DNA of 64,000 bases from Perkinsus chesapeaki ATCC PRA-425 (Eukaryota > Protista > Perkinsozoa), in assembly GCA_013115145.1 (NCBI GenBank), contig JAAPAO010000096.1:1-64000 (forward strand), given 5' to 3'. The notes below the pieces were generated by a model. The model was not told where the DNA came from, did no database searches, and worked only from the letters and a program-made list of their open reading frames with translations. A program made the translations under genes and the position numbers. Each line of letters begins with the position of its first letter. Within the stretch, counting starts at the first letter, position 1. Of this stretch, positions 382-25,399 are shown piece after piece.

Positions 382-2020
382 ATGCATCAACTTATATTAG
401 TATACTACTACTCAGCCGCCTTAGCTGTATCAAATCACATTATCGACATCACAGTAATATCGCCACATTCACGGCAAGCTGTCGCCCCATAGTGCTTTTT
501 CCCAGAAAGTGGTGCCGCGTAAGACTTCAGTGCCACGGTTTGAACATCTCATCGCCCGAACAGACGGTGGCATTCCAGTTCTGAGGGTAGGCTTTCACCC
601 GTTGACTCTGGCTCACTATTGCATTTTACAAGGCCAATGGTCTGGATTATGCTACTCTTGATGACCTTTTCCTCGGGGCTCCGTCAGCTTCGTTCATTGA
701 GGTAGCAGCGCTCAGTCCTTCTAAACAGTAGACGAAGGCGTTTTCAGCCGATAGTGAGTTTCCTCACGGACGGCCGCTCCGTGCGGTTTTCTCGGAAGGA
801 AGGCTTACTGTCGATATCGGAGCTAATTTGCCGTGTAAGTGACATAAAGCAGTACAAGAAGCAGATGGCTGATGATGTTGCATATATCTTTCTGGAACAC
901 TGGACGTAGCATCGAACAACTTACTAGTTCAGCCGCATCCAACTGTTAGGAGTTTCCCGTTGAAGTTCCCTCATTGGAAAAGACACTCGATGAAGAAAGG
1001 ATACGCGATAGAATTAGCAGACGATGATCAGACGGCAGCGCTGAAACTACTTTATATTGGCCTGCTGGGGGAAAGAGCAACCTCCGGTGGATGGCCGGAA
1101 TTTACTGACGTGAAGCGAGCTAGATACGAGAAAGAGATGACGATCGACGAACGTGTTGCTACTCGTGGAACCATTGAAGCTTTCATTGTAGAAAGGCTAT
1201 GTATAGCAGTGGAGGAGGCACAAGTAAGCAAGTTAGGATGAGCTTGGTCATTATCGAGCTCCAGCATACTACAAAGATGGTGATGCTTCGGCAGTTCATC
1301 AAGGATGAAGGTTTTGCGATGAACGCAACTGTTGTGGTAAGTTGAGGATGAGGAACAGATAGACGACACTCTTAAAAGGATTCATGCGCGTGGCAAGCCG
1401 GGAATCTTGGGAAAGCTGGGAATTTATCATAATTTGTTTTTCGACAATCGAAGGCGAGCATAGACTTTATGAAGCACTGGTTTCAGGCGGCACCTCCATT
1501 GAGCCAGAAATACGAAAGAAATCTGAAAGTAGCTGCTCACTAGGAAGGGACAAGTGTTGAGCGGCCTCGGCCTCCTTAGGTCTTTGTATTGTCGCCTAAC
1601 TCACTTTTCAAGCATCGCTTCAAGATGGAAGGATTGGTCGCCAACCGTGGGTCAGCCGAGAAACACAGTGTGACATTTGGTCTTGATAAAAGCAATAGAC
1701 TATTGCTCACTGCTTACGATTGCGGCGGGGAGGATAAAGGTCACGCAATATTACCGTAATTGAAATTGATGAAAGTCGTGTTCTCTTGAGCAGTTCTCGT
1801 TAGGAACATTCCAATAAGCGCATCTCCCGAGCACAGTGAGATGTGGGTTGTAGAGACGGTATCATACTCCCCGCTGAAGCTGAACCCGGCGGCGGCGGCA
1901 ACAGGTGTTTTCACCTTCCTTGAATGGCTTTATTCAACCATGTCGAGTAGCGATGCAAGCTTGGATGCCGCCGATACGGTATTTGTGAGAAACCTGTGCG
2001 AAACGTTACTGAAGCGTTAA
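382..2020 (+). CDS. Array gene A: secreted protein with two copies of the unrecognised LYxGL/LC domain (spliced)
   Basis: ATG382 MHQLILVYYYSAALA (signal-like). Domain A about 730-1225: SVRFSRKEGLLSISELICR, FPHW, ALKLLYIGL, AFIVERLC. Domain B about 1625-2005: SVTFGLDKSNRLLLTAYDCG, FTFLEWLYSTMS, DTVFVRNLCETLLKR*. Joining the two needs a probable GC-AG intron near 1392-1453. Confidence 0.7.
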
Positions 2021-2231
2021 TGAGGGTGTGCACCTTACAGGAGGCATGTACCAAGGATGGTGTTGTAGTTGTTGTTGTTCATCTATCTTGTCAAGATGTG
2101 TCGAGTTTTCTTACGGTTCGTCGATGCATTGTTGTGAGGTCGGGGGCGATAAAGTCCATTTTACGTTGCTACGGTTGCGCGGTAGTTATTGTGGTGTAGT
2201 GTCGTCACCTATCACGGTTATCATTGAAGCT

Positions 2232-4078
2232 ATGAGAACAGCAACTGTCGCCACTTATCTGGCTGCAATGCTCATTGGGCAGTCCACAGCTATCAAGATC
2301 CAGACTGCTAAAAAAAGAGTAACAGAACGTAAGTTTTATAACAATAATTTGCTCAGGTAGAGAAGGCGGTGCTTGAGGCAGCCTCGACAATCACTAAGAG
2401 GCCCGATATGAAGCTCAGGGTGAGACTGCCGCGGCCGAGCTGCAATTCCCTGTGGATGATTTGTCTATCAGATGGATCCGAGGGGAGTCTCAGCAATCAT
2501 GGATGAACTCAAAAATGTGAAAAATAAAGGTTGTTTCGATAATATGTACTCTTAGGACAAACGTAATGAGATATCCGATAGTAAGGGAAATGTCATCTAC
2601 ACGGACTCCCATGGCCCTGGCAACCATTTAAGCGTCGAAGGTATGCTGTATAATGGTGATGGATATGTCTACTATGAACGAAAGAGGTAGGGGCAGCAGA
2701 ATTGGTGGCAACAATTTGGTGAAATACTTATGCGATTTGCAACAACTCGGATCGGTGAGTTCGGTACAGGCTTTAACGTTTTTCATTGGTCAGTATTAAG
2801 CTTGAGAAGGAAGGAGCCTATAATAAGAGAGGAGACCGTGGTGTGAAGGGAAGCACAGCCGAGGCGGAGGTGAAAGACGCGGCCGTGGGAAGTATCTGTT
2901 CTGCGCTCGAGAAGGTAAATGAGATGATCGGTGGCGATGATGTCGGGTAGCTGTTATTATGTCAGACTGAGCCATATATTCTAGCCGAGAAAGAAGATGA
3001 TGGGACAGCTGCCGTATCCGTGAGTACTCAATCATGCAAATTGTGAAATATTAGTCGTAGTCAGAGTACGCATTAAATCGAACCTTGCCATCTTGCATTT
3101 ATCCCTGCGTGGCAGAATGACACTCTGCATGATCGCAAGTTTTGGCGGGATTAGGTGTACTTCTCCCCAGTCAGGCATATCTCCGCTATGTGGTGGTGGC
3201 ATTCCTTATTTTGCAGAGCTTATTATTGAGCCATTGCTCTTTTCAGGGCATTCCCGATAAAATAAGGAAGATACCGGAAAGGCCAGGCACTGATTGGGCC
3301 CCGGGGCCGAATTTCCTAAATGTAAGTCTGCTTGCATACACCACCATTATAGGGAGCCATGTAGCCTCACACAATTGTGTTTATCTGGAATCAAGAAGTC
3401 GGACCTCCGAAGGCGGAGATTCGACGAAAATTTTGCTAGAAAATCGCTCCCCCAGATGGAAGGAGGATTCATGTGACGGAACATCTGACGTCCCTCTACG
3501 ACTTCCTGCATTGTTGTCGCTTTCTGGGTCTGAATTCCGGAAAGGAGAGGTCTCCCGTGTTCGCTTTGCACCAGTGAGTGATCTGTTGTTGTTCCAGACG
3601 GAGTTGAGGCTAGGTGCCTATTCAAGCAGGCTGAATAGCTTTGTGAGGTCATATGATAAGAGTAGTCGGCGTAATCTATTGGCGATATTTGCCACCGTCA
3701 ATGATAAGCTAACCCTCGCCACCCTCTCGTGCGCAAACAGCACTGACGGTCTTAATTCGAGCGAGGTTGTCTTGTAAGAATCAGCTTTCGTCGACGCTTT
3801 AGTGATATTATCCCCTCAGTTACTTTCCTGGCATGTTTCCTGAGTACCCATCTCTTTCCACGTTCGATAAGTTCTCTTACAGCATGAAGAGTGGTGAAAG
3901 CGGAGATAACGTCATAAAGTGGATCTATAATGGCTTAGTCAATAGGATCACGAAGACTGACGGGAGCGCTGTGAAAGAGTTGAAGGCCAAGAGCCTTTCC
4001 GCCGATGCGCTATTCTTAACCCTTCTATGTGATGTGGTTAGTAAGTCCGATGGTATCAAGTTTAACACGAGGGCCTAA
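2232..4078 (+). CDS. Array gene B: secreted protein of the same family (spliced)
   Basis: ATG2232 MRTATVATYLAAMLIGQSTA (signal-like), then a chain of GT-AG bounded exons. Terminal domain: VSRVRFAPVSDLLLF, FPEYP, VIKWIYNGL, DALFLTLLCDVV, stop at 4078. Confidence 0.65.
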
Positions 4079-4345
4079 AGTGAAGCATAATATCGTTTTG
4101 TTTATATTCAACCAATTCATGTTGTTGTGGTTGTTGGTGTGTGTGAGCTAACATGGTCTTGTGTTGCCTATGAGGGGCCTGGATACTATCCAGGAGGCTC
4201 CTCAGACACTTCGTTAAACCACTTGTTGGGAAATGCATTCTAGCAAGTGTCATTATAAGATCGCATGCGCTGAGATCCGCGGTTGAGCAGACTAAACCCC
4301 AACTCTGAACTCCCTCGCACATCTCATAGCTGTTGCAACACTTAC

Positions 4346-6581
4346 ATGCATTTTATCATCTGCGCCTTGTCGGCAGCAGCCATCTTACTGCCTCAAGCCG
4401 AATCCTCGGTAGGAAACTCACGCACCTCTGTAGGAAACTCACGCGAGGTAAAAGCGTGCCATTCGCGATCAGTTCGGTGGAGAAATGATTGTCGTTCAGA
4501 TAGTTATGGCCAGGAGAAACGCAGAAGGTTACCAAGAACGCTTCAAGGTGTGGAATCCTTCGAATGAGAGCCCCATTGTGGGACCTATTCTTGACGTGGT
4601 TTTTGACGCAAAGGCTTTCGGTGATATGATATCCCTGATCTAGAAGCGTTCCTTTGCTCTGCAACTTAAGCTACCAATACACCAACCAGGAAATGTAAAT
4701 GTGAATAACTCCTGTACGTTACGAACTTTCATCTTGACCACAACATTTTGTGTCTTGGGCCGTAATGTGACGCAGCAAGCATCAGTTGTGCAAAACTTGG
4801 CGTTTGGGATGACGGCCTTCACTAGAACTAAGAGACTGTTGTTAGCACGTCACTGCCGTCAAGACTGACCTACCGCCTTTTAAGAACCTCTTTGGATCAA
4901 GCAGCGTATCAAATCTCAAGGTAAGGTTCCTTGCTTTGCTGCAGTTGATTTTTTCGACCAGGCGGGCAGTCTGAGTTCTGAAGAGGTGAATAAGATGTTC
5001 AAAGGGGCTCCTGACGCTTCTCTCATTTCGGTAAGGCTTTGCCAGTACATGAAGATCCAAGCTATCTATTAGTCTTCATATGTGCTGAAGAGTGAAGATG
5101 GGATGGCGAAGCTCACGGTAACTGACAAGCAACTACTCCTGGCTGAACTCGCCTGCTACAATGGGGAAAACGGAGAGACAGAGACTAGAGTCTTTCTGGA
5201 ACCAATTGAGTAGGGCTACGGCGAGAGTCAGATCCCACACATTGCGGTTAATGCTTCGTAGCACATTCCGCGTTGATTTTCCTCACTGGCAAGGCTCTCC
5301 GAAACAAGTACGAATCTCATCCGAAGGAGGTGTGTCAGCCGCCAAAAGAATGCTCTATGCCGGACTACTCGGAAGGCATACCGTTCTCAATGGTCAAATG
5401 GCGTTGCAAGAGCCTAAAGCTCGAAGGTTCATCAAAAACACCGCCTCCAATCCAGCACAGCGCAACCTGACTGCAGTATGGATCGACGAGTTTATAGTAG
5501 GAGCTCTTTGCAAGGACCTCAACCCTACATATGCTGTACGCCATTCCGTTTGTCGTGGTCATGTTTCCCAATATACTTCTAGATCAAAGCTCAGATAACA
5601 GATATCAAGAAAGTTGATGATACGCACACAATTCTGGTGGGTCGTCTGAGAAGCTTTCATGTGCCATGGGCTTTTCAGGTCCCACAAAAATTGTCAGGCT
5701 CAATATTAGATAGAGCCTATGATAGCATTCCACCACCCTCCCAGTTGAAGGTAACATCACCCGTCGGCTCATCTATCAACATGCGTTCAACTAACTCAAG
5801 CGTTAAACTCACTGGAAGCGTGTCGCCGCTTCCACCTTTGTCGTTATGCAGGCCAGGATCAGATGCATGTTTTTTAGATAACACCCGACTCTGATTCTTT
5901 TATCGTCACTGGAACATCGTCCAGAAGCGATGGCTCTGGCCCGGCGTTTGTTGCTTTCAAGGAAACTGTGCAGGAGAACGTGCTCTTCGTCAAATCCGCT
6001 AGTTGCCCAGACCTTGGAGGGATTATGTAAGTTCTTTCATTATTTACCTTTTTCCCGATCATTTCACGCAAGCCACCACATCTGGAAGTGCGATGCCGTG
6101 AACTTGTGGGGCCTTTTTTTATGGGACCTTCTCGTGGCTCCCTCGTGAATTTAACAGCTGCAGAGCTTGATATCGTATCACATTTCTGAGTGACATGGGA
6201 AAATCAATTCCTCGCGGCACTTGAAAGAAGTCTAGCGTCGTTTGCTTATTTGGATGTATGATTGAGTTGATACCCTATTCCTCGGTAACGCAAAGTCGCT
6301 ATGTACTAAGTGCGTCTATCTACTTCTTTCCTTTGCTTTTTCCCCGTAGGGAGCTACCTACGAACTTCGTCGACTTTACGTCCCTCAAGGATATGGAGAC
6401 GGCAGTGTTCAAGATGACTTCTAAGAAACAGATTCCCACGAGTATCTCCTTGCTCTATGTTGGTCTGATGCGCCGCATGGCTGCCGAAGAGAAATACACT
6501 TCTTCGCTTACTGCGAATGATATGCTGATCGATCAGTTATGCGAGTATACCAGAGCCGAATCGGAAGATACTCACTTCTAG
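4346..6581 (+). CDS. Array gene C: secreted two-domain protein (spliced)
   Basis: ATG4346 MHFIICALSAAAILLPQAES. Domain A: KLTVTDKQLLLAELACY, DFPHW, KRMLYAGLL, DEFIVGALCKDL. Domain B: ISLLYVGLM, DMLIDQLCEY, stop at 6581. Confidence 0.7.
4404..4445 (+). repeat. 21-bp tandem duplication in or next to exon 1 of gene C
   Basis: cctcggtaggaaactcacgca followed by cctctgtaggaaactcacgcg (reads SVGNSRT/SVGNSRE in frame). Confidence 0.85.
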
Positions 6582-6821
6582 ACCAATCGTCTGAGGAGTG
6601 CTCAAAGATGACTTACTTTCATGCTAGATGTTGCTGTGGAGATGATGTTGGAGAAGCTATTAGTTTTCGTGTTATCTTCTAATTCAACCAGTGCAAGTGT
6701 AATTGAAGCCATACTGTCTTCGTAGCTTCTACTGTTTGTTATGCCAACTTTTGCTACCTTCCTCTTGTGTAGACGGTACCATTACAGTGCTTTGTTCAGG
6801 AAAGTGGTTTCACCATTTTAT

Positions 6822-8454
6822 ATGCTTCCTCTTACACGTTCTCTTCTCTGTGTGCTATTCCTCATATATTTTGTCACGGCGAGTACCAGGAGTTACTCAG
6901 ATGCCAACGACGAAGATGAGATAGTAACCAGAGTCAACTTGGCTCATTCGTCATCATTTATCTCCGTAGGGTGATGACGATACTGGAATCGATGAGTTCC
7001 TGGATGAGGCTATTTCTTTACTTCCCGTCAGCGCTATAGATGAGTAATTGTATAATATGATATTCTGTTCCACTTCAGGTTGAAGTGCCGTTCACCAGCT
7101 CTCTAGTGTTCCCATCCGCACAGACAGTAAATTATAACTTCGCATCGCCATATAATCTTGTTAACTTAGGTTGGCATAGAAACGATCTTACAAGGCCTAA
7201 ACATCACCGGGGTATGTATCACTATCCTGTCGTCCAACTAAATCGATCGACTTCTTGCCAGGACAGCGGCATCATCGATAGCGGAGCGCTTTCTGTGACT
7301 TACGGGCATTGCAATTCAAAGAGTCGATGTCTATTCGAACTAAAATGTCATTCGAGGATAAGTCATTTCGAACATGACGGCGCTTCTGCCTTTTACCTCT
7401 TCCCCCGAGGAGCTCCGTAAGCGTCAAGATATACCTTTGTACTTACAATCCTAATATTCTCAGACACGTCGCCTTGGCGAGCGAAGGTGTGCCAGCAACC
7501 GAATCATGTAAAACCGAAGATGGAAAATGCATTCTCTTGAACAGACTATGTAACAATATCAGAAGTGATATCCTGGAGCTCACTAGTTCGGAGGAAAGGG
7601 CGCAAGAATCGGTACTGAACCGTTCCTATTTCGATATTGTTTTCGTGAAACATTAGAGCATCCCCTTCGTTGAGCTCCATGGCACGTTACCTTTGCATGA
7701 GGCCAGCATGACGGTACTTGCATCAGTCCAGAAAAACTCGTATATGTTAGCCTCGTAGTTCATGTCTGAGGTTGTCCCTGACGAGATAGATGATGTAGCT
7801 GAAGAAGGCAACAAGGGAGAGCGGGACCTAGTGGTAATTGAGTATCTACTGAGAAATGGTTCCTATCCGCTCCGTATTTAGGTTAGATTGGTGAGTCTAG
7901 AAGACGGCGGGCATTATTATAGAGTTAAAGGGGCCCCTAATAGTTATTTGGACTTTGATATAGGAAAAGACAACCTCCTTGCGCTCCAGCGTATGAGTTG
8001 TCCTGTAGAAGGTAAAAATAAAGGAAATAAACACAAAGATACCAAATTCGCTCCACCAGAAAAGTGAGTATCGTGCGCATGTGTGGCAAGGTAGACATCT
8101 TTCCTCAGAACCTTCCTTTGGGAGACTTCATTTTCCGACCACATTGATAAAAGAATACTCCTCAGTATCGTTTTACCGACGAAGGCCAAGCTTCCATATG
8201 TTCGAACCGCACTGACATGGCTCGCGCTAGGATTCTCGCCGGAGTCGTCGGGAGAGTCGAGCAGCGCCGAGCCTGCCGACGAGGCAACAGCATCCTACTT
8301 CATGAAGAATCAGGGCAGACTCGGCCGGGTACTCATAGACAATATATGTTCACGAAAACAACCCCAAGCGAAGCAGAAAAGCTCCCTACGCCTTCTCAAA
8401 ACCAAAACGACTGCCAAAAGATCCTCATCAAAGCAATCTTTAATCAAGTTGTAG
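6822..8454 (+). CDS. Array gene D: secreted two-domain protein (spliced)
   Basis: ATG6822 MLPLTRSLLCVLFLIYFVTAS. Domain A: LSVTYGHCNSKSRCLFELKCH, YLFPRGA, ILLNRLCNNIRSDI. The domain B exon is missed by the ORF track: ALTWLALGF, VLIDNICSRKQPQAKQKSS...KL* (TAG 8452-8454). Confidence 0.7.
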
Positions 8455-8765
8455 AATCTCTTCTATTATGCAACCGATGTCCTTAACAGCTGTAGCTGTT
8501 ACCTGCTTCAACTTCTTGTGTTGTGACATGTCTGGGATGAGGGGGAATCTAAGTAGTCGAATCTGGAGTAGAGAAGAATGATGTTAAGTATACCATTGAT
8601 GGGCTATCTAACGCGTCCTAATACATCTGGGCTATCACCTCACCGATCTGACCTCATATGAATCAACTACTTTGTACACCATGTGAGCCAAAATGTTTTC
8701 TCTAATTGGATTGACTATATTAATATTGTCCGTAATAGTTACACTTGTTCTTATCCCTGTGATAA

Positions 8766-10968
8766 ATGCGTTTTATTCTCTTCCCATCATCCCTCGCTTT
8801 GCTCACCCACAGCGCAACTCCCGCCGGAGACCAAGAGACCACCTCAGTTGATGTAAGTGATAGCAGCGAGTGAAGTGATTTCATTTCGAGTTTTTTTTTC
8901 AAGTTTGATGAGATTATCAAGGGCCTCGAGGATCAAAGCCGACAACTTGAAGATGAGGTGAGTCGTTATTCAACGCTTGCGGTTGGTTAACGATTTTTCG
9001 TAAATACCAAAGCTCTCGTCATCTCGTGTTATCTCCTTGACATCACCGAATACCTTTGAAGTTCGAGGCTCATAGGGACAGTGTATTACCCAAGCCTAGA
9101 GTCAACCGCAGATGGGATATTCCTAATAGTCAACCCGATTCCACTGGTACTCATTGCCCTGGATGAACTCATCACCCATGCACTCGTCGGAAATGACCTG
9201 TATGGGTGGTGGAGAATATGAATAAGCGCACTGCCGTGGAGTACACCACTCGTTTATACAACCTCCACCCATGGCTGATGTGGCATGGAGGAGCTGTTGG
9301 CATCTCAGATCAGCAAGCTTCCGAAGGCTTCTGAAGGAAGAAACGTCGCAAAGGTAAGTGGCTTATGATTGTACTGTGGCGATATGGTGTACCTTAGGGA
9401 TCGGATAAAACTGAAACATCTAATCTGGTTCCTCCGCCTAAGGTAAGAATGTTGCAACCATTGGAAACAGGTGAATGATTTAGCCTAAGAGAACGTACAC
9501 GACTTATACTGTGGGCGCTGCAGCCGAGGTGAGCCTTTTCATTGGAGGTATCATATTATTCCATTCCAGGGCCTGTATGATATTGATTCAGCGTCGAACC
9601 ATGCCAAATTTTCTCACCGTGACAGTGAGGGCCGCCCTATGCTTTCTGAGATTAAGTGTGCCTCACGCGTAACGTATGGTGGGTATGAAAGTGCTTCCTA
9701 CTACTTTCCCGATGGCTACCCGTAAGTATCTTAGACGTCTCATTATTCTGCTAATTTTGGTTGATCAGATTGACTGGGTTATGTGATCCTACAAAGACTT
9801 TAAATTCATGTCTCCTACCAAATGCTAGCGCGGAACTAGCTCAGATCATTTGTCCACGTATGGTCGAGTTAGTCGACGAAATTGTTGAAAAAAGAGCGGA
9901 GGAGAAGACTCCCGAGGGGCTGAATAAGACTGAAGTTAGGAAAGAAACGGTAGGCCCATTTCTAAAAAGTATTGTAGCTCTCACGACCTTTGTGCCTTTT
10001 CAGGATCATCCTTTCTTTGAGACCCACAATTTGAAAGAAATGGGCAGGGAAATAGATATCACTGTAAATTCAGCCACAAGGCTGATTAAGCCTTCAATGT
10101 TGTTGTCAGTTTATAACAAAGGAGTTGCCCAGGAATGGTGATTTCACTTTTGGAAGTACACCTCAGACAGCCCGGAACTTGACAGTGAGAATATGAAACG
10201 TTGAGCCTTGAGTACGAAGAGATTATTAGCGTCTGTTAGGTCAAGCTTGTGCGAGCAGCCGAAGAGGTGAAATACAGGGTGCAAGACTTGGCGGATAGGA
10301 GCGCCGATTTCAAAATTGATGACGGACGTCTCACACTTCGCACGCTTATATGCCCAAAGGAGGAGAAAGTGACAGCTAAAAAACCGAACAGGAGTAGATT
10401 GCAAAGCGCGATATCGAAGTTACCGAAGTTCTTACGTAAGAAGCAAGATACGACGCAGACTTCGAGCGTTGAGATGTTCGCTGATGAAACTAGGTAAGGC
10501 ATTGAATGCAGCAGGCTGGTTTAGTGATCTACTTTCAGCGCTACTTGTGTCTTCAGATCATTTCCTGCTAAGTGGCCCGACCTACCTACGCTATCTGGAG
10601 TCGACAGTGCCACCGTTACGCTCTCTCCGAGTGCTACATATGACCACGTGGTCGGCGCCTTAAAGTGGCTGCTCCTAGGAATGGTGAATCATGCCACTAC
10701 AAATACGCCTAAAGATCAAAGTACAAGCCAAGCGAAATCTCCATACGACTCCATGAAACCGAATGATATTTTCGTCCATTACCTTTGCCGTTATATGTCA
10801 AAGAAGAGGGCAACAGCTAAACTCTTGGAAAGTCCATCATCGCCCCAAGTTGTCGAGCCTACCACCCAAACAGGGACTGGAATCCCGGACCACCTGAACC
10901 GCGCCTACCAAACCTTGCATGTCAGGGGGAGGAAGAAAACGACAGACGATAGGAAGGCGAGCATATAG
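8766..10968 (+). CDS. Array gene E: secreted two-domain protein (spliced)
   Basis: ATG8766 MRFILFPSSLALLTHS. Domain A: AKFSHRDSEGRPMLSEIKCA, YYFPDGY, LAQIICPRMVE. Domain B: FKIDDGRLTLRTLICP, ALKWLLLGM, DIFVHYLCRYMSKK. Confidence 0.7.
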
Positions 10969-11185
10969 GTAGATGCCATCTGTGAAGGTGACATCATCGT
11001 TATCTCATTCTTTTATTTATTCTCCGATATTCGATTTATAAATTTATTCTTCTTTCTCATGTGTGATGTTCTCATGATGATGTTATGTGCATTTACAACG
11101 AGTCGTTGAATTTGTCAATAGCCTTCGTTTAACCATTATGGCCACTATCCACTATCATTGAGCTTTCACGTTATTCTCCATCTTA

Positions 11186-13864
11186 ATGCGTAAATACCAT
11201 ATCCTGCTACTTGTCGCTGTGTTAGCTATAGCGAAGAGCTCAACGAGCCAACGAGATGAGGAGGTGAGTTATCCCAGTCAGTGCTATTTAGTATAAGTAT
11301 CTTCCTGTGCCAGCAGAGGCCAATACCCCCGCCACGAAAGAATAAAGAGAACGATCAAGTGAGGCCCGGGCTGGGCGCGTGTAACTGACCTATTAGCATG
11401 GTCAGCTGTGTTCCGACTCTTCCTCGGTAAAGCGGCGCTGCATGATACCATACTTGAGGAAGCTAGCCTGGATTCAAATTGGCCATCGAATCATTATTCC
11501 CTCAGGCTCGGGTGGACTCTGTGCGTCATCGTCGTGATCCTCCTCCTCGCCCAAACGCCGTAAGATATTTTCCATTTGCTTTGCCGATCACTGGGTGTCT
11601 TGTTCAGACGCCGACGCGGTTGCAAGGTTCTACAGCAACTGACACTAAGGCGAGGATGCTTGGTTCGAGGAAAATACATCATCTATTTTCAGGGCTCTGG
11701 AGGACGGCACGGGGTTGAGGGGATTACTCAGCAAACTATCGCTGTATGTTGTGATGATATTGTTGTCGCTTCGATCCTCGATTGTTATTGTTTAGCAGGG
11801 AGACGTTGAAGGAAATGGAGCTGTTAGGAAAGCACCCGCCAAGGTATGTAGCTAAGTTAATATACACGTAACTAACGTGACTTAAGCTACTTGTTGTTGT
11901 TGCAGCCACCAAGATCGTTTATATCTGGACAGAGCGCCGAAAGCGGCTCCCTGAGCGGTGCGGGAAAGGTAGGTCTCATAGGCCATATAGGCGCGATGTG
12001 TGTGCATTTGTGTATCAGGAGACCACGCAAATGAAGACGATGAAGAAACGAGTGAGTTTACCGCCGATTAGAAATATCTACCTCTGAACTGTCATGCAAC
12101 CTAAGCAGAGGCCGTTCGGAGGCCGAGACGCAGCTCCTGGCCATCATTTGATGCTTTCCTAACGTTCTAGGCCCCGGCTGTCCCAGACGACCGGTACAAG
12201 GACTTCAAGTCACTGCTTGCCGAAGGGGAGACTAATATCCTCGATGTATGTGATGATCCTTAGACTAGTTTATTGGCTTGATGCTTATTTTCCTCAGAGT
12301 GCAAAAGCTATCACCACTGGAGCGGGTGATATCGGGAGCATCGCGAATGTACACATGCCATATCGCCATATCGGGATAACGCTTGTTACTCTAGGAACAC
12401 AACATGATCGTTTCTGACGAAGGAAAAATTATTTTCCAACCAAGTCATGAAGGAGAGACGTTGATGATAACAGAAATGAAATGCCCAACCAGGGATAGAT
12501 ACAAACTACCCAGTTTCCCCCACCCGGAGCACTCCTACTATATATTTCCGGAAGGCCTTTCGTGAGTCTTTCTCCACTCCAAATTTTTACCTTTATTATT
12601 CAGGAAGTTTCGACTGAGCTTTGGGATGTTTAAAAGTGCTACCAGAGATGACACTTATGAAATTAAGACGTCGTCCAGGCTGGAAGACTCCTTGAAGATA
12701 CTCTACATGGGGCTCTCATGGGATAGAGCTGTTCCGGCGAAAGCCGTCCATGCCCCCGCTCTCCGAGCTGCTCGGATCACTGATAGACTGTGCCATTTCG
12801 TACAGAGTGATGTTGAAGCACTTGTAAAGAATGATAAAGATAAAGTCGAAGGTGGAGTCAAGATGTTGAAGTCGGATGACAATGAGGTGAGCATGGTCTG
12901 TTAGTCCTCATTCGTATGCGAAGCAAAAAACGGAGATACTCGTGTTGCGCCAGCTAGACAGCTGATAGAGCTGTATTGAGCCATATCCTCTCCAGGCTAT
13001 ACCTTTCGCAGAACTGCATGGAACGGAACCTCTGAAGGATTCGCCTATTAAATTCACGGTAAGTATTCTTCCCATCAGAGCCTGTCGTGAGTTGTCTCAG
13101 TTCATATCGAGTACCGCACCAAACCTTAACTCCCCTATTATCGTCGATGATAAAGTTTTACAGCTTAATGTTAATGATTTGAAGGTAGGTCAGGGGACGG
13201 AGATCTGATTACTCTACTTATGGCTACGAGAGTTGAGGCAAACGTCTCTAGGTGAGAAACGAAATATATGCCATAGTCCGCCGGTATATTATAGTTTATG
13301 AAATCTCATTATATTACCCGTTCAGGTCACCCAAGTAGGTCGCGCATTCTACGAAGTCCAGTCTGAAGATTTCAAAGTGCGCTTTGAGGCCCATGCTAAA
13401 TATTTCCGTCTTAAGGAAATGAAATGTCCGGGCCGCTGGTACTCAGATAAACTAGACTCTCCTACCGATTTCGTCTTCAAGGAGGGGCTCAGGTAGCGCC
13501 AATCGTTCTAAATGTTATCTCGAGCATTGCTGGTATCTTCAGCGATTTTTTGGTAAAATTTCAAGGCTCCGATTTACTGGGGGAAGTCACTAAAGCCACA
13601 TTTGACTTGCCCGATGCTACGGAGGCCGAAGTGGCCCTCAAATGGCTATTGCGAGTTATCTCAGCAGAGGCCTCTTCAGTATTGGAGACCATGGAGGGAA
13701 CTAATAAATCTGAATTCTTGATGAGATCCACAACCCCAGAGGGATTCCTCATCCGCAACCTTTGTCGCCAGAAGGGCTCTTCAGAACATAAGAAGGACAC
13801 TTCCAGTCGTCCTGTTTCGAAGGTTAAAAGCGTCCTTAAGAGGGTGAAGCCGACTCCCAAGTGA
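11186..13864 (+). CDS. Array gene F: secreted two-domain protein (spliced)
   Basis: ATG11186 MRKYHILLLVAVLAIAKS. Domain A: IIFQPSHEGETLMITEMKCP, YIFPEGL, SLKILYMGL, ITDRLCHF. Domain B: VRFEAHAKYFRLKEMKCPG, FVFKEGL, ALKWLLRVI, GFLIRNLCRQK, then a basic tail. Confidence 0.7.
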
Positions 13865-13979
13865 TAATCTATGATCTGATGAAGATGTTTATCAATAGCT
13901 GGTGTTCATGTACAACGGTGTTCTGCTTCATTCTCTATTGTGTTGTTAATCACTCACTTTTTCCCTGCAAGTACATCGC

Positions 13980-14071
13980 GCATTCTACATTCTATCTAGC
14001 CCTATGATAGGGCCAGATAGAATATAGAATGCACGATAGATAGGGCCCCTATGATAGGGGCCCTATCCATC
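13980..14071. repeat. Twin near-perfect palindromes sharing the core CCCTAT-G-ATAGGG
   Basis: 13980-14032 has 26-bp arms with 2 mismatches. 14039-14067 has perfect 14-bp arms, extendable to 14035-14071 with 1 mismatch. Both have a 1-nt centre. Confidence 0.9.
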
Positions 14072-14154
14072 AACAACCCCATTCAAAATGCATGAGCCAG
14101 GTATTCAATAAACAGAAGTGCGCGGCATTGTATCATTCAGTTCTACCCACTGTT

Positions 14155-17100
14155 ATGCCTATCAAGTTTCACTTTCTCTCCCTTGCTGCTCTCACGAGTA
14201 CAAGCATCTCTCTAGCTAGTGTAGGCGGCCCCGACGGAGTCAACCCTTAGTCGTCCTTCAGTTGCTCAGCGGGTTGTCATCTAGTTCAAGTTTCAACGAA
14301 GATTTTGGTAGAGCGTATAAGAAGGTGAGATAACCTCCCTTCTAAATCTCCTGCCTTCTGTATGAACAGGTTACTCATCGCGATTGGGAAGGGTCGAAAT
14401 CAAGTGCGTCTACGCGTGAGGGAGACACACCAGTAAGCTTCTCCACAAGCAGGTTTACTTCAGTACAGGGCTCAGAGTAGACAGTGATCGCTCTACCAAG
14501 CTCGGTTCTTACTAGAATGCGAACGACTGTGACCATTCGCATTATCACTTTTATATCATTATGCTCAGGTAAATCGTCGCAGACGTCACTCTTCTGCTGA
14601 GATTTTCCCGGTATCTTATTCCAGCACTAAGCTTGAGCCTGATCTGTCGTTCAGAAACCGTCAAAGAAAGATCGTCCATTTGAGAGAGTGCAGAGCTTCG
14701 GTGGTTTCGACAAAGAGGAAAGCGTATCTCATAAAATGGACTCTATGCTTCTCATTTTTGCTGTAGATGGAAGCTGAAGTCCCACACACTACGGATGAAG
14801 ATTGGGAACATGCATTTGATACATCCCGCCAAGTGAGCAGTCATGCCATAGTATTATGCTGTGGGATTATAGTACAGTGCGGAAGCTTGGACTAGTAGAG
14901 AAGTGTGCCTTTACCGATAAGACTTTGTACCTATTCAAAGACTTGCTCTCTAGGCGGCTTAATCACATCAGTGTTTAACCGGTGTGAAGGAGCTACCGCT
15001 AACTCCGTACCGCACTTGCTGCAACCCGTCACGGATGTTCAGCACTGTTCCGTATCTTTCTTGATCCATTTTTTTAATTATCATCTGGACATCAATGGCT
15101 TTCAGGCAAGCGAGAATAACGTGGGCCCCGGCAACTTGTTGACACTTGCTGGCAGCAAGTCCCCTCTTCCGCCAGACATTGCGGAGTTTGACCCATTACA
15201 AGGAAAGGTATGCTGCTTACGACTATTATGTATACCGTCTCTTCGTCAGACCGACGGAGATCAAAACGGTTTGACGGCGCATGAGGAATCGGGATACTCA
15301 GCCCAAGTGCGTTTGCAATAAGTTCCTTTTACCAAACTCGGCGTACCTTTCTTTGGTATTCAATTCAGCAGGCTACAGTACGGTAAAGCAGAGATTCTCT
15401 TACCTTCTCCTCGACCACGGTTTCCGCCATCAGCTTACTTCCAGCCTGGGATCAGATTCGTCCTTCAGTTGGTTGAAAATTATGACTTACATTCAGTTCA
15501 TGAGTTTGACTGAGCATGATATACTCGTAACCTCCATTTCATCCAAAACGCTCCCCCGGGGACTTATGAGCATTGTAGCTCAGAGATTATCACTTTGTCC
15601 CTCTGAAGGAAACGTTGTCAACTCTGGTACAAACGAAATTTGGTCCAATAGATTCGTAGCCTTATGTCGACGACTTCCTACTAGAAAGTTCCTTGCCTAG
15701 TCTGAGGGGGCTCCTTCTATCGCAATTGAAAAGATGTTTGAAACGACAGGAATTATTAAACTTGAGAATAGTGGAATACGGAAGGTTAGGGGCATAGATT
15801 TAACGAATACGTCATACTAGCAATGTGATAATATAATGGCTTTTTGTTATAAGAAAGGGTATCCTTGTTGACATCATCTGCTACTCCACTATCGGAGTGA
15901 TTTCCACTAGATGTGCTCGCCAGAATAGTTTCTAAGTCGCTAGTTTGTGCTCACCTTATTCAGAGTACCGGTGACTCGATCCTCAATACTGCTATAATAG
16001 ATAGCGACACTACTGTTACCAGCAGCGGGAGCGGCAGTCACACGAGCAATGTAGAGGATTCTCAGCTGCATATGAGGCAGTGATTGTCATTCACAGGCTC
16101 CCAAGCGACACGAAAGCCAAACGGCGCAACCGCCTTTTGATCAACTCTTGGTAAAGGATGAATACAATATGTTGAAGGTTAGAATAAGCAGAGTTCGCAT
16201 CATTTTCAAGTTTCAGAACGATGTCTTTGGAAGACCAAACCTCATCGGAGGGGAAGGCGAACGGCTTGTTTACCCGGTAGGCCTCAACGCGTGTTACTTG
16301 GCTCTTTCCATTTCTCATAATCTTGAAAAATCAATGTGTCTTAGGAACCCACGTGGACCACACATACTGGCAATTTCATGATCGAGTTTTTCACACCGTC
16401 ATGGTCCCAGGGGCAGCTGGCAATCAGGCAGTTAAGCTGCAAGGCCCGGTTAGATTATCATAATGACCACTTCGCTGGATATGTGTTCCCTAAAGGCCTA
16501 CAGTAGCAAAGGAGCGCCAGCTTGTCACATCCATCTTTCCTTCCTTCAGTCGTTTCAATATGAGGTTCCCTGGATTCCCTGGAGCCCCAAAGGAGCATCG
16601 CCTTTATGGCATACAACACACTGGTCTCCTATCAGACTCTGTCAGACTCCTCTACATAGGGACAGCAGAACCCGTCGAGGGTCCCCCCCAAGACGTCAGG
16701 GCTAGCGCCACTCTACTATATCCAATTACAGTAGCTTTATGCAAGATGATTCAAGATGACATCACTGCTCACGAGCAGGATGGAGACTATAGGATACTCA
16801 AGGTATCATATGGCGATATCTGTATTATATAGCCTTCTCTTAGGATGTTCCATATATCGAAGCGCATAAAAGCATAACAGGAGACGGTGGAGCAGAGATA
16901 ACAGTAAGGTCCACTCTGACCCGCACTCATTATTGAATTGCCCTTCAATCTAGCTGGTATCAAAGGCGCTGCCCGGACCGGATGATTTTCCCAATAAAGT
17001 TGACTCCAGTGTTCCTGAGCCCGAAACTTTAAAGGTAGAAAGAACCCAATGTGCAAAAACGGAGATGCTCATATGGTATCTTCTGCATTCAGGTCGAAGT

Positions 17101-17706
17101 CAAGAAGCGTAAAAAAGGAAATTCAGTCTACACAGTCAAAGACAAGGGCAGCTTCATTTCTTTCGTGTCCGAAAAAGATCGGCTTAGATTCAACGCAATG
17201 TCCTGTCCTGGCAAGTTGCTCGCCAGTAAGATTTCCTACGAGAAGCTCGAAACCAAGCCAGCGTAGAAATTGAGCTTTCTGGGGTGTGAAATGTTTGCAT
17301 GCCTTTTAGGTACATCTCCGCCCAGTGGAGAAGAACGTTCCTTAAAGACTATAATGTGCTTCCTTTCGTGATGAAGGAAAGTGCCTCCGACGAGGAAGTT
17401 ATTAGCGCCTTGCGATGGGTATACTCTGGTCTTCCGTTCCCTCACTCTGGTACGGGTTACATTCCCGGGTCTAAAAGGAAACCTCCCCCGAAGTCCAGTG
17501 CTAACAAGCTGTTTGTGAAGATTCTTTGCTCGAATCCACCGGGAAAATCTGGGGAGAAGAAGAAGAGCAAAGGATCAAAGATTAAGAAGGAAAAGCTACA
17601 GAAGGAGAAAAAGGGGGATAAAAAAGAGAAAAAACCGAGAGATGCCCAAGGTGGAGGCAAAGGGTTTATGAAAGGCCTTTTCACACGAAAGAAGACAGCC
17701 TCATAA
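14155..17706 (+). CDS. Array gene G: secreted two-domain protein with a long N-terminal region (spliced)
   Basis: ATG14155 MPIKFHFLSLAALTSTSISLA. Domain A: GQLAIRQLSCK, YVFPKGL, SVRLLYIGT, PITVALCKMIQDD. Domain B: ISFVSEKDRLRFNAMSCPG, ALRWVYSGL, KLFVKILCSN, then a Lys-rich tail. The region could be two genes. Confidence 0.6.
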
Positions 17707-17814
17707 ATCATACGGTCTTGGCCTAGTGAATTCAGTACAGGATTTCAGAGCTGCGACTCTAACTTACCAAAATTTATTCTATTTGAAGTATCTATAAACT
17801 GGCTCATAAAAAGC

Positions 17815-19552
17815 ATGCGTGTCAGCGGTGTGTATGTTAGACTCAATTCACTCAAGTTGTTGTCCTTGTTAATAAAGGGTTGGTGCTGCTTACGAAGACT
17901 CGAACCAACACTATAGGTTGAGAAATCGAAACACACTTGCTCGCTCTGCTGAGCAGAGCGAGCAACACAAAAGAGCAGAGTCTGCTCTTTCGTGTTCGAA
18001 GCAGAGGGCAATTAGCTGTATGCTTTAGAGCGTTCTTTGTGAATGCTTTCATGTATAGACTTCACCAAAGAGCAACGTTCGATGACGCAACGGACAATAT
18101 CGCTGTATTTCCGTCCATTCTCAACCCACTCGATTTCCTTGGAAGGCTATTCAACATTTCTAGCAAGTTTTACCATTTTTAACTTCTTGCAGGATACTAA
18201 CCGGATAGAACATGAGAACTACAAAGCTGTCTTCACTGACGGGGGCGAACTGGCGCTTGCAGAGCTAATTTGCTTACATCCCACCTTGATAAACTATCAG
18301 ACGGTGTTTAGCTTCCCAGAAGGCTTATCGTAATAAATCTCTTAGATAGGCACGCAGATAGCAGGCTCGAATCTCAGGAGATTCAAGCTCGACATGGCGA
18401 AGCTGGCTGGCGCACCCCGAACGCCACAAGTCTATACCATAAAACGTTCACCTTCTATACAGGAATCTTACGGACTCCTCCTTACCGGTCTGGAGTATTT
18501 CACGAAAGAAAGCAACATGCCTAAAACAGCTGAAGAAGTTATCTTGAAAGGATTGTGCAAGATGGTCGAGGAAGACGTCAGTCTCATGATCGAGAAAGGA
18601 GCAAGTTTGCATTCTGAGGCGACAGGATCCCATGTTTTGCAGCGGCCAGAGAGCAGAAAAGTCATCAATTGGGTTCATCCCATTGCTTAGTTCTCTCCTT
18701 TAGACTATTCCATATTTAAGGCTCACCAAGTTTGCCTTGACAAATACGTCGGCCATTGTTGATGTACCAACCATGCTTAGAATATGCTAAGCTTCGATTT
18801 TGGTCTTCTGCCATGTCAGATGGTATCCGATGAAGCACCAATCGACCTTTCTTTCGCAACTGATTTCGCGTTACCCAGTCCCAGTAGCCTAAAGGTAAGT
18901 TTCATGACTTCTACAAGTTCTGGCAGTATTGCGTCGTTGCTACGGGGCCGTTCATGAGACAGATTTTTCCCGCAATCTTTGAAGGTGCTTGTCATTAGGT
19001 TGCGCCGTCTTCTACTTCGAAAACCTACAAGATTTCTCACGAAGGCAACTGGTTGAAGTTCGGTCTCCGCGATGACTTCATCGTCCTTAAATCTTACCAA
19101 TGCCCTATGGAACCCGGGGAGTCTCACGAGACGTCTCGAATGAAAGAATTCAAGGATAGAAAACGGCCCTTGTAGTGTGATCCCAAGTTCCTCACATACA
19201 CACACTTGTCATTCTTGTCAGTTTATTCGAGACTCGTTGGATGCCATCAGATGCCTTGTCTGATGTAACACTCACATCTTTCCGTATACCCCAAAGTCTC
19301 CAACTTAATATGGCATTTGTTAACGCCTACTTCAAGTGGTTTTATGTTGGGGTGGCCTTGAATTCATTGGAAGGTAGACCCTTCCCACGAAGTTATGCTA
19401 ATCAAGAATATTTGACGACTGCTACCGATGCGAATGACCTATTTATTCGCAACGTGTGCTATTATGCGCGTTTGCGGGTAACGGAATCTAGTGCTCCAGT
19501 CCAAGCTCTAAGGAAGTGCAAATCATGCTCATCTCTTAACGCATTGGTATGA
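17815..19552 (+). CDS. Array gene H: two-domain family member with a short or uncertain 5' end
   Basis: Domain A: AVFTDGGELALAELICL, FSFPEGL, YGLLLTGL, VILKGLCKMVEED. Domain B: LKFGLRDDFIVLKSYQCP, FKWFYVGV, DLFIRNVCYY. The start codon is uncertain (17815 or 18043). Confidence 0.6.
17937..17996. repeat. Twin palindromes with 1-nt centres
   Basis: ttgctcgctctgct-g-agcagagcgagcaa (perfect 14-bp arms) overlaps aacacaaaagagcaga-g-tctgctctttcgtgtt (16-bp arms, 1 mismatch). Confidence 0.9.
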
Positions 19553-19836
19553 AGCTAAAGGATGATGTCATTGTGGCTTATATTGTTGTCCTTGCATGTT
19601 GTACTGTGTGGTTGTCTAATTTCATTTCTTGTGTACATAGTGTAGGCACAGACTCAACAAAGCATGCAAAGTGTAACACAACACATGCCTGATCTGCGTG
19701 AGCTACTACTTGCTACGCAGCCAACAACCTACTACCACATTAAGAGTATTCTTTCAAGCGGTTTATCTTAACACTTGCGAGCGCTACTCCAATAGTGTAG
19801 TATGGAAACGTATAGTAATGTATCATGACAGTGTAC

Positions 19837-22800
19837 TTAAATTAATCGACCAGCATAGCACACAAAGGCACCGCCAGACAGCAGTTCGAGCTTAACGCTT
19901 TCTCTGGCTAACGCAATCGATACCGGCAAGTCAAATACTCCCTCTTCATGTACAGGAGAGGTGCTGGAAGTAACTCGCCACTTCTGCAGCAACTCGATGC
20001 AGAATGAATCGCACTCTCTGCCGAGGACTTCCCATAAGGTGCCAACAACATGAGCGCTTCCTCCCACCATATAGTAGTAAGCTGGAGGGATAGGCTCGAA
20101 CCGTCCATTAGCTATACCGGACTCTGAACACCGAATAGAAGCGCAACCCATGAGAAGGGCATCCGCTCTCAGAATCTGCGAAGCAAGCAACCGGGTGGGC
20201 CTATTTATCGGGTCTTACTCTTTTTTCCATACTACTAGTGGACCAATATTGTCCGCCGCCACTGTGACCAATATAAAGGAATACTCGACGGCTCGAAAGT
20301 GCTTTGATGACTTCTTCAATCGAAGGGTCAGTACCTGGACAGGATAATTGATCACACTGCAGGCCACCCCAATACGATGCAATATTTCGTATTTTTTATG
20401 ATTTCTCATCTACTAGTCATTCACATCTACTAGCTGTAGATGACTCGTCTACTGTAGTAGACTTCTACTATCGACTGTTCCACTCTGAAGCCTCGTAGCA
20501 CATGAATTGTCTGATTGTCAGCATTTCCTATACAAATGCAGTCTCACTGCTCAAGGCGGTGTGTCTCGCGTTCTACGCCAAGACCAAGATTCGAGTAATA
20601 GCGCGAACTGACCGGCTTTTCCTTCCCAGAATTCATGTGCCAAAATAGGGTCGAGCTTCCTATTAGCTTTGGTGAGATCAGCGCTTGGATCAAGAACATA
20701 ATATCCGCCCTTGCCAGCAGCCATGGGATGACTTTGGACCATTAGGTTAATGCAACCACCGCGTACAGTTGGATGTTGTCTGAACTCAGCATGACTCCAT
20801 GTATGCTTTGCTCATCACCTACCCGCCAAGCATGGCTTCTATGGGAAGGTTCATCAGACAGGGTGCTAGGAAGAGGAACAGTGCGGAAGCTCGTCTACTA
20901 CGATCAAGATTAGACCTGAACCGGCGTAGCCGAATTCGCCAACAGCATTTGTATGAACTACCCCTCATCTATATCAAACTCGAGCGCAGCACGGATCATT
21001 TCTCGAGCCTTTCGGCTTGTCGTCGTCTCCGAAGAATCGTCCAAAGCATCCAGGGAGGCCTCGGGTGATGCACAGTCTCCGTTACCGATAGTGAGCAGCA
21101 GACGCCAGTCTCCCAGGAGCTCCTTCCGGATTCGCTCGGTAGCTCGCCACGCTCTGGCTTCGTAGTTGTCTCGACTTCGCCAGAATTTATGACCATCTTG
21201 TTTCGATTGAACAGCGAGGCGGACATCGGCCATGTTGTCGGAAACCACTTGCTCGAGTTTGCCAGCTGCCCGCAGGACCGCCTCGGGTGAGGCCGATAGT
21301 AGCGCCAGCAAGCAGCGACCTACATGAGGGATAACGCAAGCCTTCCCAGGAGGAGACATACCCCAGGGAAATCTACGTAAGAGCCAAAAGCGGCCTAGAT
21401 GATCTTGCTCTATGAATGCAGAGTTGAGGGCGACAGGGTAGTGTTGCGTATCAATATCATCGGCCCATTGGGAGGTGCAAAGACGGACAAGTAACCTTTT
21501 GAGAAAAAGAATGTTTCATCAAAGTAGGCATGTGGTTACTTCTCCCGTGCGAGCCTGTCATCCAGGAACGCTGGAAGGTTGTTCTCCGATGATCGCTCGG
21601 ACACTCGGTATTCCGTCAACATGAAGAGGAAGGCTCTGGATGACCAGGAAACTGAGCGGTGAACTCGAAACAGAGCATGAGAGATGTCACTGACCTGCTG
21701 TGATGGCGGCCTTCGCCACCACACTACTGAATAGCTGCCTATCATGCTTACTGACTTTGCACAAGGAGATGTCCCCCAATAACGATAGCAGCAAGCCTCC
21801 ACCCTTCCGTGCCAGCCATGCACTCTGTGACTCTACAACGGCTTTCTCAAGGCTTGCTCGCACGGTGGCTATGAGCCTGGCCATCTCTGCTATATAAGAG
21901 CAACAGTCTTGTCCAGCCCCCCGGCGCCGATTCGTGTTGCAATCGCTCCGCTGAGTGTCGCTCCCCAGTAGAGCCAAGACCCGCCTCAGGCATTCTGGGC
22001 AAATGGTCAGCTTGGGCTTGGTCTCATGAACCACCCAGTAAGCATGCGTGGCCTCTTGTAGATCTCTCTCGGTTGCACGCTCACGCGCCACACTCGGGAT
22101 CTCCGGCATCGCATCTCCAGCGCACTGAAGGGACGACTAAGGCGATGAGTGCTTGTAGAGAAGCCAACCTCATCGGTGATGCTAGTAAGGAGAGCTTCGG
22201 CAACTGAGCGGACAGTTAGATGGGGGCATTCAGCGGCTTTCTGGTAGAAGAAAAGTGCTCCCTTCTTCGATCCAGTGTCATCATGGGCAACTCCAGTTAG
22301 AAGGGCCGCCTTGTACGCCGCCATTACCTGAAAACTCAAGATCAAAGTAGGCGGAGCGATGCAAGCCTAATTGGTATAAAGCACAGCAGACACTTTCACA
22401 AGGGGGAACGAACGAATGAGTTCAACTTTCATCTGCTGGCGAGAACTAAAAGGCAGCTACATTTCACCTTCCACGCTCCCGAGTCGATCGCGTCGTCCCC
22501 GAACAACTGCCGAGACAGCGAGCTCGAACCGTTGGTGAAGTCACTCACATTCACTGGAGGCCACCGAAGCAATCTGAGCTGCAACGGAGATATCCGACTC
22601 CGAATGGTCCACGGATCCTCACCAGTTTGAGACCTACCGCCGATCTGAGCACGGCTGCGTGGTCCCGACAGTACAGCCACTCCAAGACAGCCAGAAGGAG
22701 CTTTGGCCGCTCCCACCACGCAGGCTCATCAGCCAGGACATTCGCTTTAAGATCGCGGATGGACTCGGCAGACCAGAGGTTAACCGAGAAGTCGGTGAGG

Positions 22801-24170
22801 TGAGGTAACCAGGAGTCCTCTTGAAGGTAACAATTACCACAGGCATGGAGGTGATGATAAAGACTTGACTTCAAAGTTGCGAGTAATGCATTGCTGAGGA
22901 GGATTAGGAATGCTTGGGGCAGCATTGCTTTGCGAACGGCGAAGCGATAAAGTTGTAGAACACTCCCGAGGAATGTATGCTAACGTGGATACAAGAGCTG
23001 CTTCATACGAACCTCCGCAACAAGCATGTTCCCCTCACCTGTCACCATCAGGTCCATTTAATACGACACAGCCGGCCAAGATAATGGTGAGGTCAGAATC
23101 AGACAGCATGAACCATGGCGACGCCACATGATACACCAATTTGGCCAAGTTAGACCAGTCTTTCCCATTGGAGCGTTTGGACTCTAGGACCTGACCGACA
23201 GATAGCTACCGCAGGCCCTCATCAGATGAAGAACCTGAATATCTCGAGCTATCGTCGAGTCAACACCAGTAGTCTCGGTTATCAAATCAACTATTTTGGA
23301 CATAGTTGCCGATGCTTCTTCCGTCTCTGTCAGCGACACTCTAGAGAGTAGGACCGAACACATGAGGATCTTCATATGCTTGGAGAGACCAGGCTCATGC
23401 ATACTAGAAAGTATGAAATCGCGGGACATCTGCCAGACCAATTTCATCTGCGTTCGGGCCGGCCTGCTGACCTGTGCGATTAATCTGGCCAAATCATATG
23501 CCGCCAACTGTATGGCAGCCTCATCATGACCAAGTGCCGCTCTAAGGGGTGCCTCAACAGCTTCAAGGACAGCACGATCACCAGTAGCTGACCTGACCAG
23601 TATGGCTACCATACATCATCACACGTAGAATACCGCGCAACAGTTCGAAGTCTGATAATATTGGTGATAATATTTCCCTGGTCAGTTGACGTCGACAACT
23701 CCTCAGCTATGATCCTTGAGAACACTGTGAACACTTCTTCCTTGTCAGCACCACCTTCAACAACTGGAGCGGCAACAACCGCGCCTAACATGTCTTGGCA
23801 CTGCAATCGACTGTACTAGTCACTTACCCAGGCTGATCAGATCGGTTGCGTGATCCCCGCTGAGTCGTTGAGCTATCCGAGCGGCCAAGAGTGCCCCATC
23901 TAGCGGCTCCAAGGGCTCATTCTCAGTTTTGCCCGCTGCCAGAGTTCTCAACCTCAGTCGGAGCCCGCCCGGCTTGAGGTGAACTGCTTTACATAAAGCT
24001 CGGCGCTCCTTTGAACTCAGTGGAGTCTGATCAACGAAGATTCAACAGTGAGAAGAACTGCTAGCCACCACCTTGGGCAGCACATCAGTTATCTTGCGGA
24101 CTAGAATCCCCACGTCAGAGCCATTACTTGCTCGAGCCAGCTCGGCCAACATTTCCTCAACGGTGACCAT
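19837..24170 (-). CDS. ESP1: Separase (peptidase C50) family protease, multi-exon
   Basis: Spliced C-terminus reads YYVLDPSADL...WEGKAG|TDPSIEEVIKALSSRRVFLYIGHSGG...LLMGCAS...VVGTLWEV...SIALARESVKLELLSGGAFVCY, containing the His/Cys dyad motifs of C50. An upstream exon has FWRSRDNYE...LLGDWRLLL. A long helical N-terminus starts at ATG24170. Confidence 0.85.
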
Positions 24171-24236
24171 GACCTCCTCACTTGTCACTGTAATTCGGTA
24201 TTAACAACGCAACATGACAAGAAGGTAGATGTTGGG

Positions 24237-25285: not shown

Positions 25286-25399
25286 GGTAAGAGAGTAGCT
25301 GATAAGAACCTTGCTATTATAGTAGTGCAACGAGCACTGGAAGCAGGTGGAATCATTTCGATCAATTGAGGCTATGCTGTGGTATTTCTACAATTCGCG

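Follow-up and report, generated by a model that had tools for sequence, protein, structure and literature searches.

A tandem, fast-diverging and probably secreted family of Perkinsus proteins built from a duplicated two-cysteine module

Apicomplexan parasites carry lineage-specific families of secreted proteins encoded in tandem, such as the motif-named families of Cryptosporidium or the SRS and ROP arrays of Toxoplasma. Perkinsids lie close to the root of the dinoflagellate/apicomplexan radiation; Perkinsus species are responsible for major losses of oysters and clams, and their secreted or surface proteins are known in very few cases. The locus described here lies in a 64,000-nucleotide stretch of Perkinsus chesapeaki ATCC PRA-425 DNA (contig JAAPAO010000096.1, positions 1 to 64,000; hereafter the window), which is eukaryotic DNA with very short GT..AG introns. 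Its plus strand holds, at 382-19552, eight tandem genes (A to H) with a total of 15 copies of a module that is full in 13 cases and has a shortened C-half in two (D1 and E1). The locus is like the apicomplexan arrays in its signal peptides (here putative) and tandem duplication, in being confined to a single genus, and in diverging fast with a gene content that varies between species, but its module has no Pfam or structural match to any of those families, from which a two-cysteine unit of six predicted strands and two helices is distinct. The biological kind, a genus-specific, tandem and fast-evolving family of secreted parasite proteins, is hence a familiar one, while the domain itself is not. 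Our best explanation, which we hold with moderate confidence, is that the eight genes are separate and encode a Perkinsus-restricted, probably secreted family whose modules serve as a binding scaffold at the host interface.

A typical module spans ~130-170 amino acids (aa) and is encoded mainly by two exons, X and Y. Exon X (~50-60 aa, strand-like) runs from Y-x-V through a conserved F to LxLxE[LM]xC, a loop of variable length and F-P-x-G-L; exon Y starts with [RK]FxxxF and continues with [AS]L[KR][WL]LYxGL, a second variable stretch and [FL][IL]xxLC. In 14 X/Y pairs the two are separated by exactly one GT..AG intron of 42-52 bp, in phase 2 and directly after FPxGL, and at all 14 introns (906-19221) reading through the GTA or GTG donor brings an in-frame stop at the exon end. 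That 14 copies have their intron at one position argues strongly that the two-exon unit as a whole descends from a single ancestor. Two more small conserved exons, U and V, lie between the Y of the first module and the X of the second and are recognised by the patterns I-P-F-x-E-L-H-G (genes D, F, G and H) and F-[IM]-S-x-x-x-P (genes D, E, F, G and H), respectively. The two-cysteine module so defined (LxLxELxC and FPxGL; WLYxGL and xxLC; phase-2 intron) accounts for the 15 window modules, 13 of them full, and proteins of Perkinsus olseni match both the X and the Y profile. An initial annotation, made from the letters alone, had described about 15 copies in about eight genes, all on the plus strand; motifs, common intron and profiles give the same count, and in a six-frame reading of 1-20 kb the motifs stand where they had been placed and are confined to that strand.

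Most of the copies align significantly, a point on which the initial annotation had made the existence of the family depend. In leave-one-out tests with profile hidden Markov models (HMMs) against a background of 2383 six-frame fragments, the omitted X was the best non-training fragment in 13 of 14 cases, and the omitted Y the best apart from the untrained Y of module C2 in 12 of 14; the failures were D1 X, D1 Y and E1 Y. Scores were low (9-32 bits; E-values from 1e-8 to about 1, mostly <= 0.05) because the copies are only 11-28% identical to one another. The fifteenth Y, that of C2 (profile match 6360-6560), was found by the Y profile from outside the training set with an E-value of 4e-8, and neither profile had matches elsewhere in the 64 kb on either strand. 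At the DNA level no repeat between copies was found, as first noted, apart from one 30-nt family attributable to chance.

After each last module comes a stop codon, followed by the ATG and hydrophobic start of the next gene, and genes A to G open with the signal-peptide-like stretches, judged by hydrophobicity, that had been reported for seven genes. A profile of the window exons retrieved three deposited P. chesapeaki proteins, KAF4672892.1, KAF4672893.1 and KAF4672894.1 (FOL47_011243-5, on one 79.7-kb contig), which match the window exon by exon and are the products of this very locus. KAF4672892.1 (996 aa; window 990-6578) chains genes A-C and KAF4672893.1 (1828 aa; 6822-17703) chains D-G. 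Were these models right, the locus would encode two giant multi-module proteins and a short one, with the internal hydrophobic stretches as membrane spans, and the small introns of both entries do agree with ours. However, although 55 of the 77 gaps that separate mapped exon blocks here measure 38-62 bp, the four gene-to-gene joins of the deposited models need gaps of 418-575 bp that remove a stop codon and the start of the next gene and, in three of the four, also part of the conserved Y half. Moreover, the P. olseni orthologues are annotated as separate genes (259-609 aa), two of which (P0014 and P0023) begin with signal-like stretches. Because of these joins and of the separate P. olseni genes, we read the 996-aa and 1828-aa models as probable wrong fusions of several genes that call for correction of the annotation, and regard giant proteins as improbable. 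If the models are fused, the UniProt label of the 1828-aa entry, 'transmembrane protein', would rest on internal leaders.

Two cysteines are the only near-invariant residues of the module: that of X is invariant in all 21 aligned modules, and that of Y is present wherever a deposited model reaches its position and in all 15 window copies. Mature F, mature C, mature P0007 and the two-module region of G have exactly four cysteines, two per module, and this count, together with the leaders, points to one structural disulfide per module, which, as conservation suggests, would tie the sheet to the last helix. D1 and E1, the two shortened modules, have a remodelled layout in common: a short loop takes the place of the region from strand 5 to helix 1 and brings with it one additional pair of cysteines (C-x6-C in D1, C-x8-C in E1); both Y halves are ~30 aa long, and the X half of D1 has two further extra cysteines. 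This common layout suggests retained structure rather than decay. The opposite case, an array of largely decaying or silent DNA whose duplicated genes drift without function, could draw on the extreme divergence, the shortening of D1 and E1, a 5' end of H that cannot be modelled and the lack of RNA evidence. Yet all 15 modules keep open reading frames (ORFs), both cysteines, the core motifs and the intron position, and P. olseni retains a syntenic array with these motifs; we consider such decay very unlikely.

The module could be assigned to no named family in the initial annotation, and our searches agree, being empty outside Perkinsus. In Pfam, no family matched at E <= 0.01 either the exons or the full proteins P0001, P0002, P0004, P0007, P0014, P0016, P0017 and P0023, the best stray scores being 12-15 bits against cut-offs of 22-27. 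Among 177,635 distinct PDB chain sequences, the profiles of Y and of the full module (alignments A1 and A4) reached best E-values of 0.19 and 0.92, and feature searches of the ESM Atlas gave no usable match. An exhaustive search of 1.84 billion protein representatives with the Y profile returned ten proteins at E <= 0.001: six from Perkinsus, and four others (P0006, P0008, P0009 and P0010) which share only short repeated WLY-like or LLYIGL-like motifs and were rejected as artefacts. The Perkinsus matches are "hypothetical proteins" of P. chesapeaki and P. olseni only. Word-index protein searches retrieved nothing with the 211-aa exon at 3142-3774 or with the two-module alignment A3, in the latter case with lysine-rich tails suspected of filling the candidate list, and a single P. 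olseni protein with residues 170-500 of P0017. No mention of the deposited accession numbers was found in the literature searched. The genes are therefore already deposited, unnamed, without family assignment and partly mis-modelled, whereas no description of the family, or of its module, exon logic or predicted fold, exists in Pfam, the PDB or that literature.

The P. olseni relatives KAF4696372.1, KAF4696375.1, KAF4747116.1, KAF4734432.1 and the 609-aa FOZ62_011034 resemble the window genes in motifs, module order and syntenic position, and are orthologues or paralogues of them. Around KAF4696375.1, nine Y and seven X profile matches at E <= 0.1 lie on the plus strand, and after the array comes the same flank as in the window, a minus-strand stretch carrying Separin_C and His_Phos_2 genes (window 19805-30143, minus strand, colinear with 13218-22415 of P. 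olseni JABANP010000011.1). Amino acid identity is 63% over 1837 aa in the flank, whereas the array aligns in pieces only (42% over 960 aa) and orthologues compared end to end are just 32-38% identical (C 31.9%, G 38.5%). Gene content differs as well: two genes are annotated between C and G in P. olseni versus three in P. chesapeaki, and P. olseni lacks a counterpart of gene H at the syntenic place, the G orthologue there directly adjoining the flank. The Y half of H1 resembles the Y of the first G module, and H may have arisen by duplication of G on the P. chesapeaki side. A further two-module member, KAF4734432.1 (P. olseni JABANO010016870.1, 923-3071), lies on a contig without detectable similarity to array or flank, and hence P. 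olseni has at least a second locus; the contig of P0007 has no detectable similarity to the window locus. From the synteny, the difference in gene content and the identity gap relative to the flank, the family predates the P. chesapeaki/P. olseni split, varies in gene number and has diverged more quickly than the genes around it, so that the initial description of it as old and fast-diverging holds.

A maximum-likelihood tree of the 21 modules is divided by a branch with support 92/94, which sets the nine first-position modules apart from the second-position modules and the single module of B. This split indicates that the two-module protein came first and gene duplication later; the terminal branches measure ~1 change per site, for which reason any finer order of duplications is not reliable. 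On this view a two-module ancestor was followed by tandem duplication of its gene, and the copies then diverged rapidly while members were gained or lost from one species to the other.

The first module of G was folded with AlphaFold2 using the 21-module alignment, the inputs being sub-ranges of deposited proteins, and gave a mean predicted local distance difference test score (pLDDT) of 83.1 and a predicted template modelling score (pTM) of 0.76, with the five models at 78-83. The predicted elements are strands 8-13, 16-21 and 31-38, the third of which holds the invariant Cys37; a low-confidence loop; strand 48-57 (FPxGL), strands 60-62 and 75-77 and helix 85-96 (LLYIG); and a second low-confidence loop followed by helix 110-133 with the second cysteine, Cys122. 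Both loops coincide with large insertions in the alignment. A two-module model of gene F (pLDDT 69.9, pTM 0.75) repeats this order of elements twice, with exons U and V as extra strands before the second module. Foldseek found no neighbour in the PDB (best E-values 0.88 for the single module and 0.10 for the two-module model), nor did the structure search of the ESM Atlas (best template modelling scores 0.43 and 0.29, respectively). UBC/RWD-like alpha+beta domains, which likewise place helices after a small antiparallel sheet, come up repeatedly among the weak structural matches, and the module might be a divergent member in which the invariant cysteine is catalytic or bears a ligand; it does not, however, fit that superfold, which is defined by an N-terminal helix, a four-strand meander and helices together with an HPN-Cys (E2) or YPxxxP (RWD) motif, and of the readings weighed here this is the least probable. 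Only tentatively, as a possibility we would not presume upon, could the module be a new fold confined to Perkinsus: a disulfide-stapled unit of six strands and two helices, duplicated and used as a fast-diversifying secreted scaffold at the host interface. Were that so, perkinsids would have a class of host-interaction proteins that had so far gone unrecognised. A confident predicted structure without recognisable neighbour in any case makes the module a cheap and well-defined target for structure determination.

The hydrophobic N-terminal stretches, found in seven of the eight genes and in P. olseni P0014 and P0023, suggest that the proteins are probably secreted. Looking beyond the leaders, we saw no consistent PEXEL-like RxL motif, and the module has no conserved set of His, Asp or Ser and no polar triad suggestive of catalysis. 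Its conserved residues are hydrophobic core positions, and length variation is concentrated in two loops, one after the first cysteine and the other between the helices. Altogether, missing catalytic set, conserved core and variable loops argue for a stable extracellular binding scaffold as the most likely nature of the module, with diversifying loops and tails. A typical member would begin with a signal peptide and continue with a linker that varies and is often charged, two modules and, often, a basic tail at the C terminus. The leader would carry the protein into the endoplasmic reticulum, each module would fold into a small sheet covered by two helices and locked by its disulfide, and two modules in tandem, with variable loops and basic tails, would present a diversified surface.

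Where such a surface would be displayed is the point at which a serious, though unlikely, alternative enters, namely that these are secretory-pathway proteins working inside the parasite, either in the trophozoite wall or within the lumen of a secretory organelle that belongs to the apical complex of the zoospore. The evidence for secretion applies to them equally and the data here do not tell the destinations apart; the basic C-terminal tails, for instance, could bind an acidic wall matrix. Against this, the gap between orthologues and neighbouring genes in identity and the differing gene content are more typical of interface proteins, and the low-complexity repeats that wall proteins commonly contain are absent. 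Tandem duplication, change in gene number and fast divergence together fit proteins exposed to the host or the outside, and are usual at the parasite surface or host interface, where we would place the scaffold. Of the interpretation first put forward, then, the real, old and fast-diverging family with two near-invariant cysteines stands; secretion and the disulfide are plausible extensions of it, and the role as 'effector or antigen' is a guess from context.

Several observations weigh against a secreted, host-facing scaffold or limit its reach. The signal calls were made from hydrophobicity only; for H no convincing start was found, and that of B is only probable. None of the listed RNA runs contains the stretch, and in two small P. 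chesapeaki RNA runs no contig matched 11100-17000. Protein searches brought up no family member from P. marinus, through true absence or missing annotation, which limits what can be claimed of age within the genus. The alignments behind the structural models are shallow (21 and 10 rows, from two species only), and fast divergence can be compatible with relaxed constraint as well as with host-driven selection.

The array is now a candidate family defined by its gene boundaries, its module and its orthologues in another species, and its members can be tested as secreted or surface proteins, as diagnostic antigens and as markers of variation between species. It also offers an evolutionary example of how perkinsid-like lineages invent secreted proteins of their own. 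The coordinates of its genes and modules are collected in Table 1.

Table 1. Genes and modules of the P. chesapeaki array, with positions in the window.
Feature	Position	Strand	Description
Gene A	382..2020	+	2 modules (A1, A2); ATG 382, then hydrophobic stretch; stop 2018-2020
Module A1	706..1220	+	X 706-905, intron 906-949, Y 950-1220; leave-one-out X E 0.008, Y E 4e-8
Module A2	1580..2017	+	X 1580-1755, intron 1756-1803, Y 1804-2017
Gene B	2232..4078	+	1 module, second-position type; probable signal-like start 2232; long N-terminal region
Module B	3598..4048	+	X about 3598-3773, intron 3774-3819, Y 3820-4048
Gene C	4346..6581	+	2 modules (C1, C2); signal-like start; orthologue of P. olseni P0014/P0016
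Module C1	5073..5529	+	X 5073-5209, intron 5210-5261, Y 5262-5529
Module C2	5878..6560	+	X 5878-6027, Y 6351-6560; exon structure between them uncertain
Gene D	6822..8454	+	Signal-like start; shortened D1; linker exons U 7657-7713, V 7759-7841; D2
Module D1	7262..7569	+	X 7262-7416, intron 7417-7463, short Y 7464-7569; extra cysteines; not recovered in leave-one-out
Module D2	7885..8367	+	X 7885-8063, intron 8064-8108, Y 8109-8367
Gene E	8766..10968	+	Signal-like start 8766 (alternative 8693); shortened E1; U 10004-10063, V 10110-10184; E2
Module E1	9570..9871	+	X 9570-9721, intron 9722-9768, short Y 9769-9871; extra cysteines; leave-one-out X E 2e-5, Y not recovered
Module E2	10240..10806	+	X 10240-10493, intron 10494-10538, Y 10539-10806
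Gene F	11186..13864	+	Signal-like start; F1; U 12996-13058, V 13101-13184; F2; basic tail
Module F1	12395..12811	+	X 12395-12561, intron 12562-12603, Y 12604-12811
Module F2	13326..13783	+	X 13326-13492, intron 13493-13542, Y 13543-13783
Gene G	14092..17706	+	Signal-like start (ATG 14092 or 14155); long module-free N-terminal region; 2 modules; lysine-rich tail; orthologue of P. olseni P0017/P0023
First module of G	16345..16760	+	X 16345-16502, intron 16503-16549, Y 16550-16760; module used for folding
Second module of G	17093..17547	+	Preceded by U 16844-16903, V 16954-17034; X 17093-17262, intron 17263-17309, Y 17310-17547
Gene H	about 18043..19552	+	2 modules (H1, H2); no clear signal-like start found; 5' end placed approximately
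Module H1	18190..18576	+	X 18190-18329, intron 18330-18377, Y 18378-18576
Module H2	18999..19477	+	Preceded by U 18704-18763, V 18820-18894; X 18999-19171, intron 19172-19221, Y 19222-19477

Only introns backed by conservation among paralogues or by the deposited models were kept. A splice-aware Viterbi gene finder was discarded: it over-spliced when self-trained, and merged or split genes when its parameters were fixed. Also rejected was an additional module in the N-terminal region of gene G (14.1-16.3 kb), which neither the X nor the Y profile supports and where the P. olseni orthologue is module-free too.

Rfam and tRNA scans of the whole window were empty. Outside the array, the ten longest ORFs of the window at 20000-64000 have no Pfam match at E <= 0.001, making this a domain-poor neighbourhood, and an assembly gap of 97 N lies at 36661-36757. 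In the spacer between genes F and G (~13995-14070), three copies of a near-palindromic CCCTATGATAGGG-like motif occur within ~75 bp.

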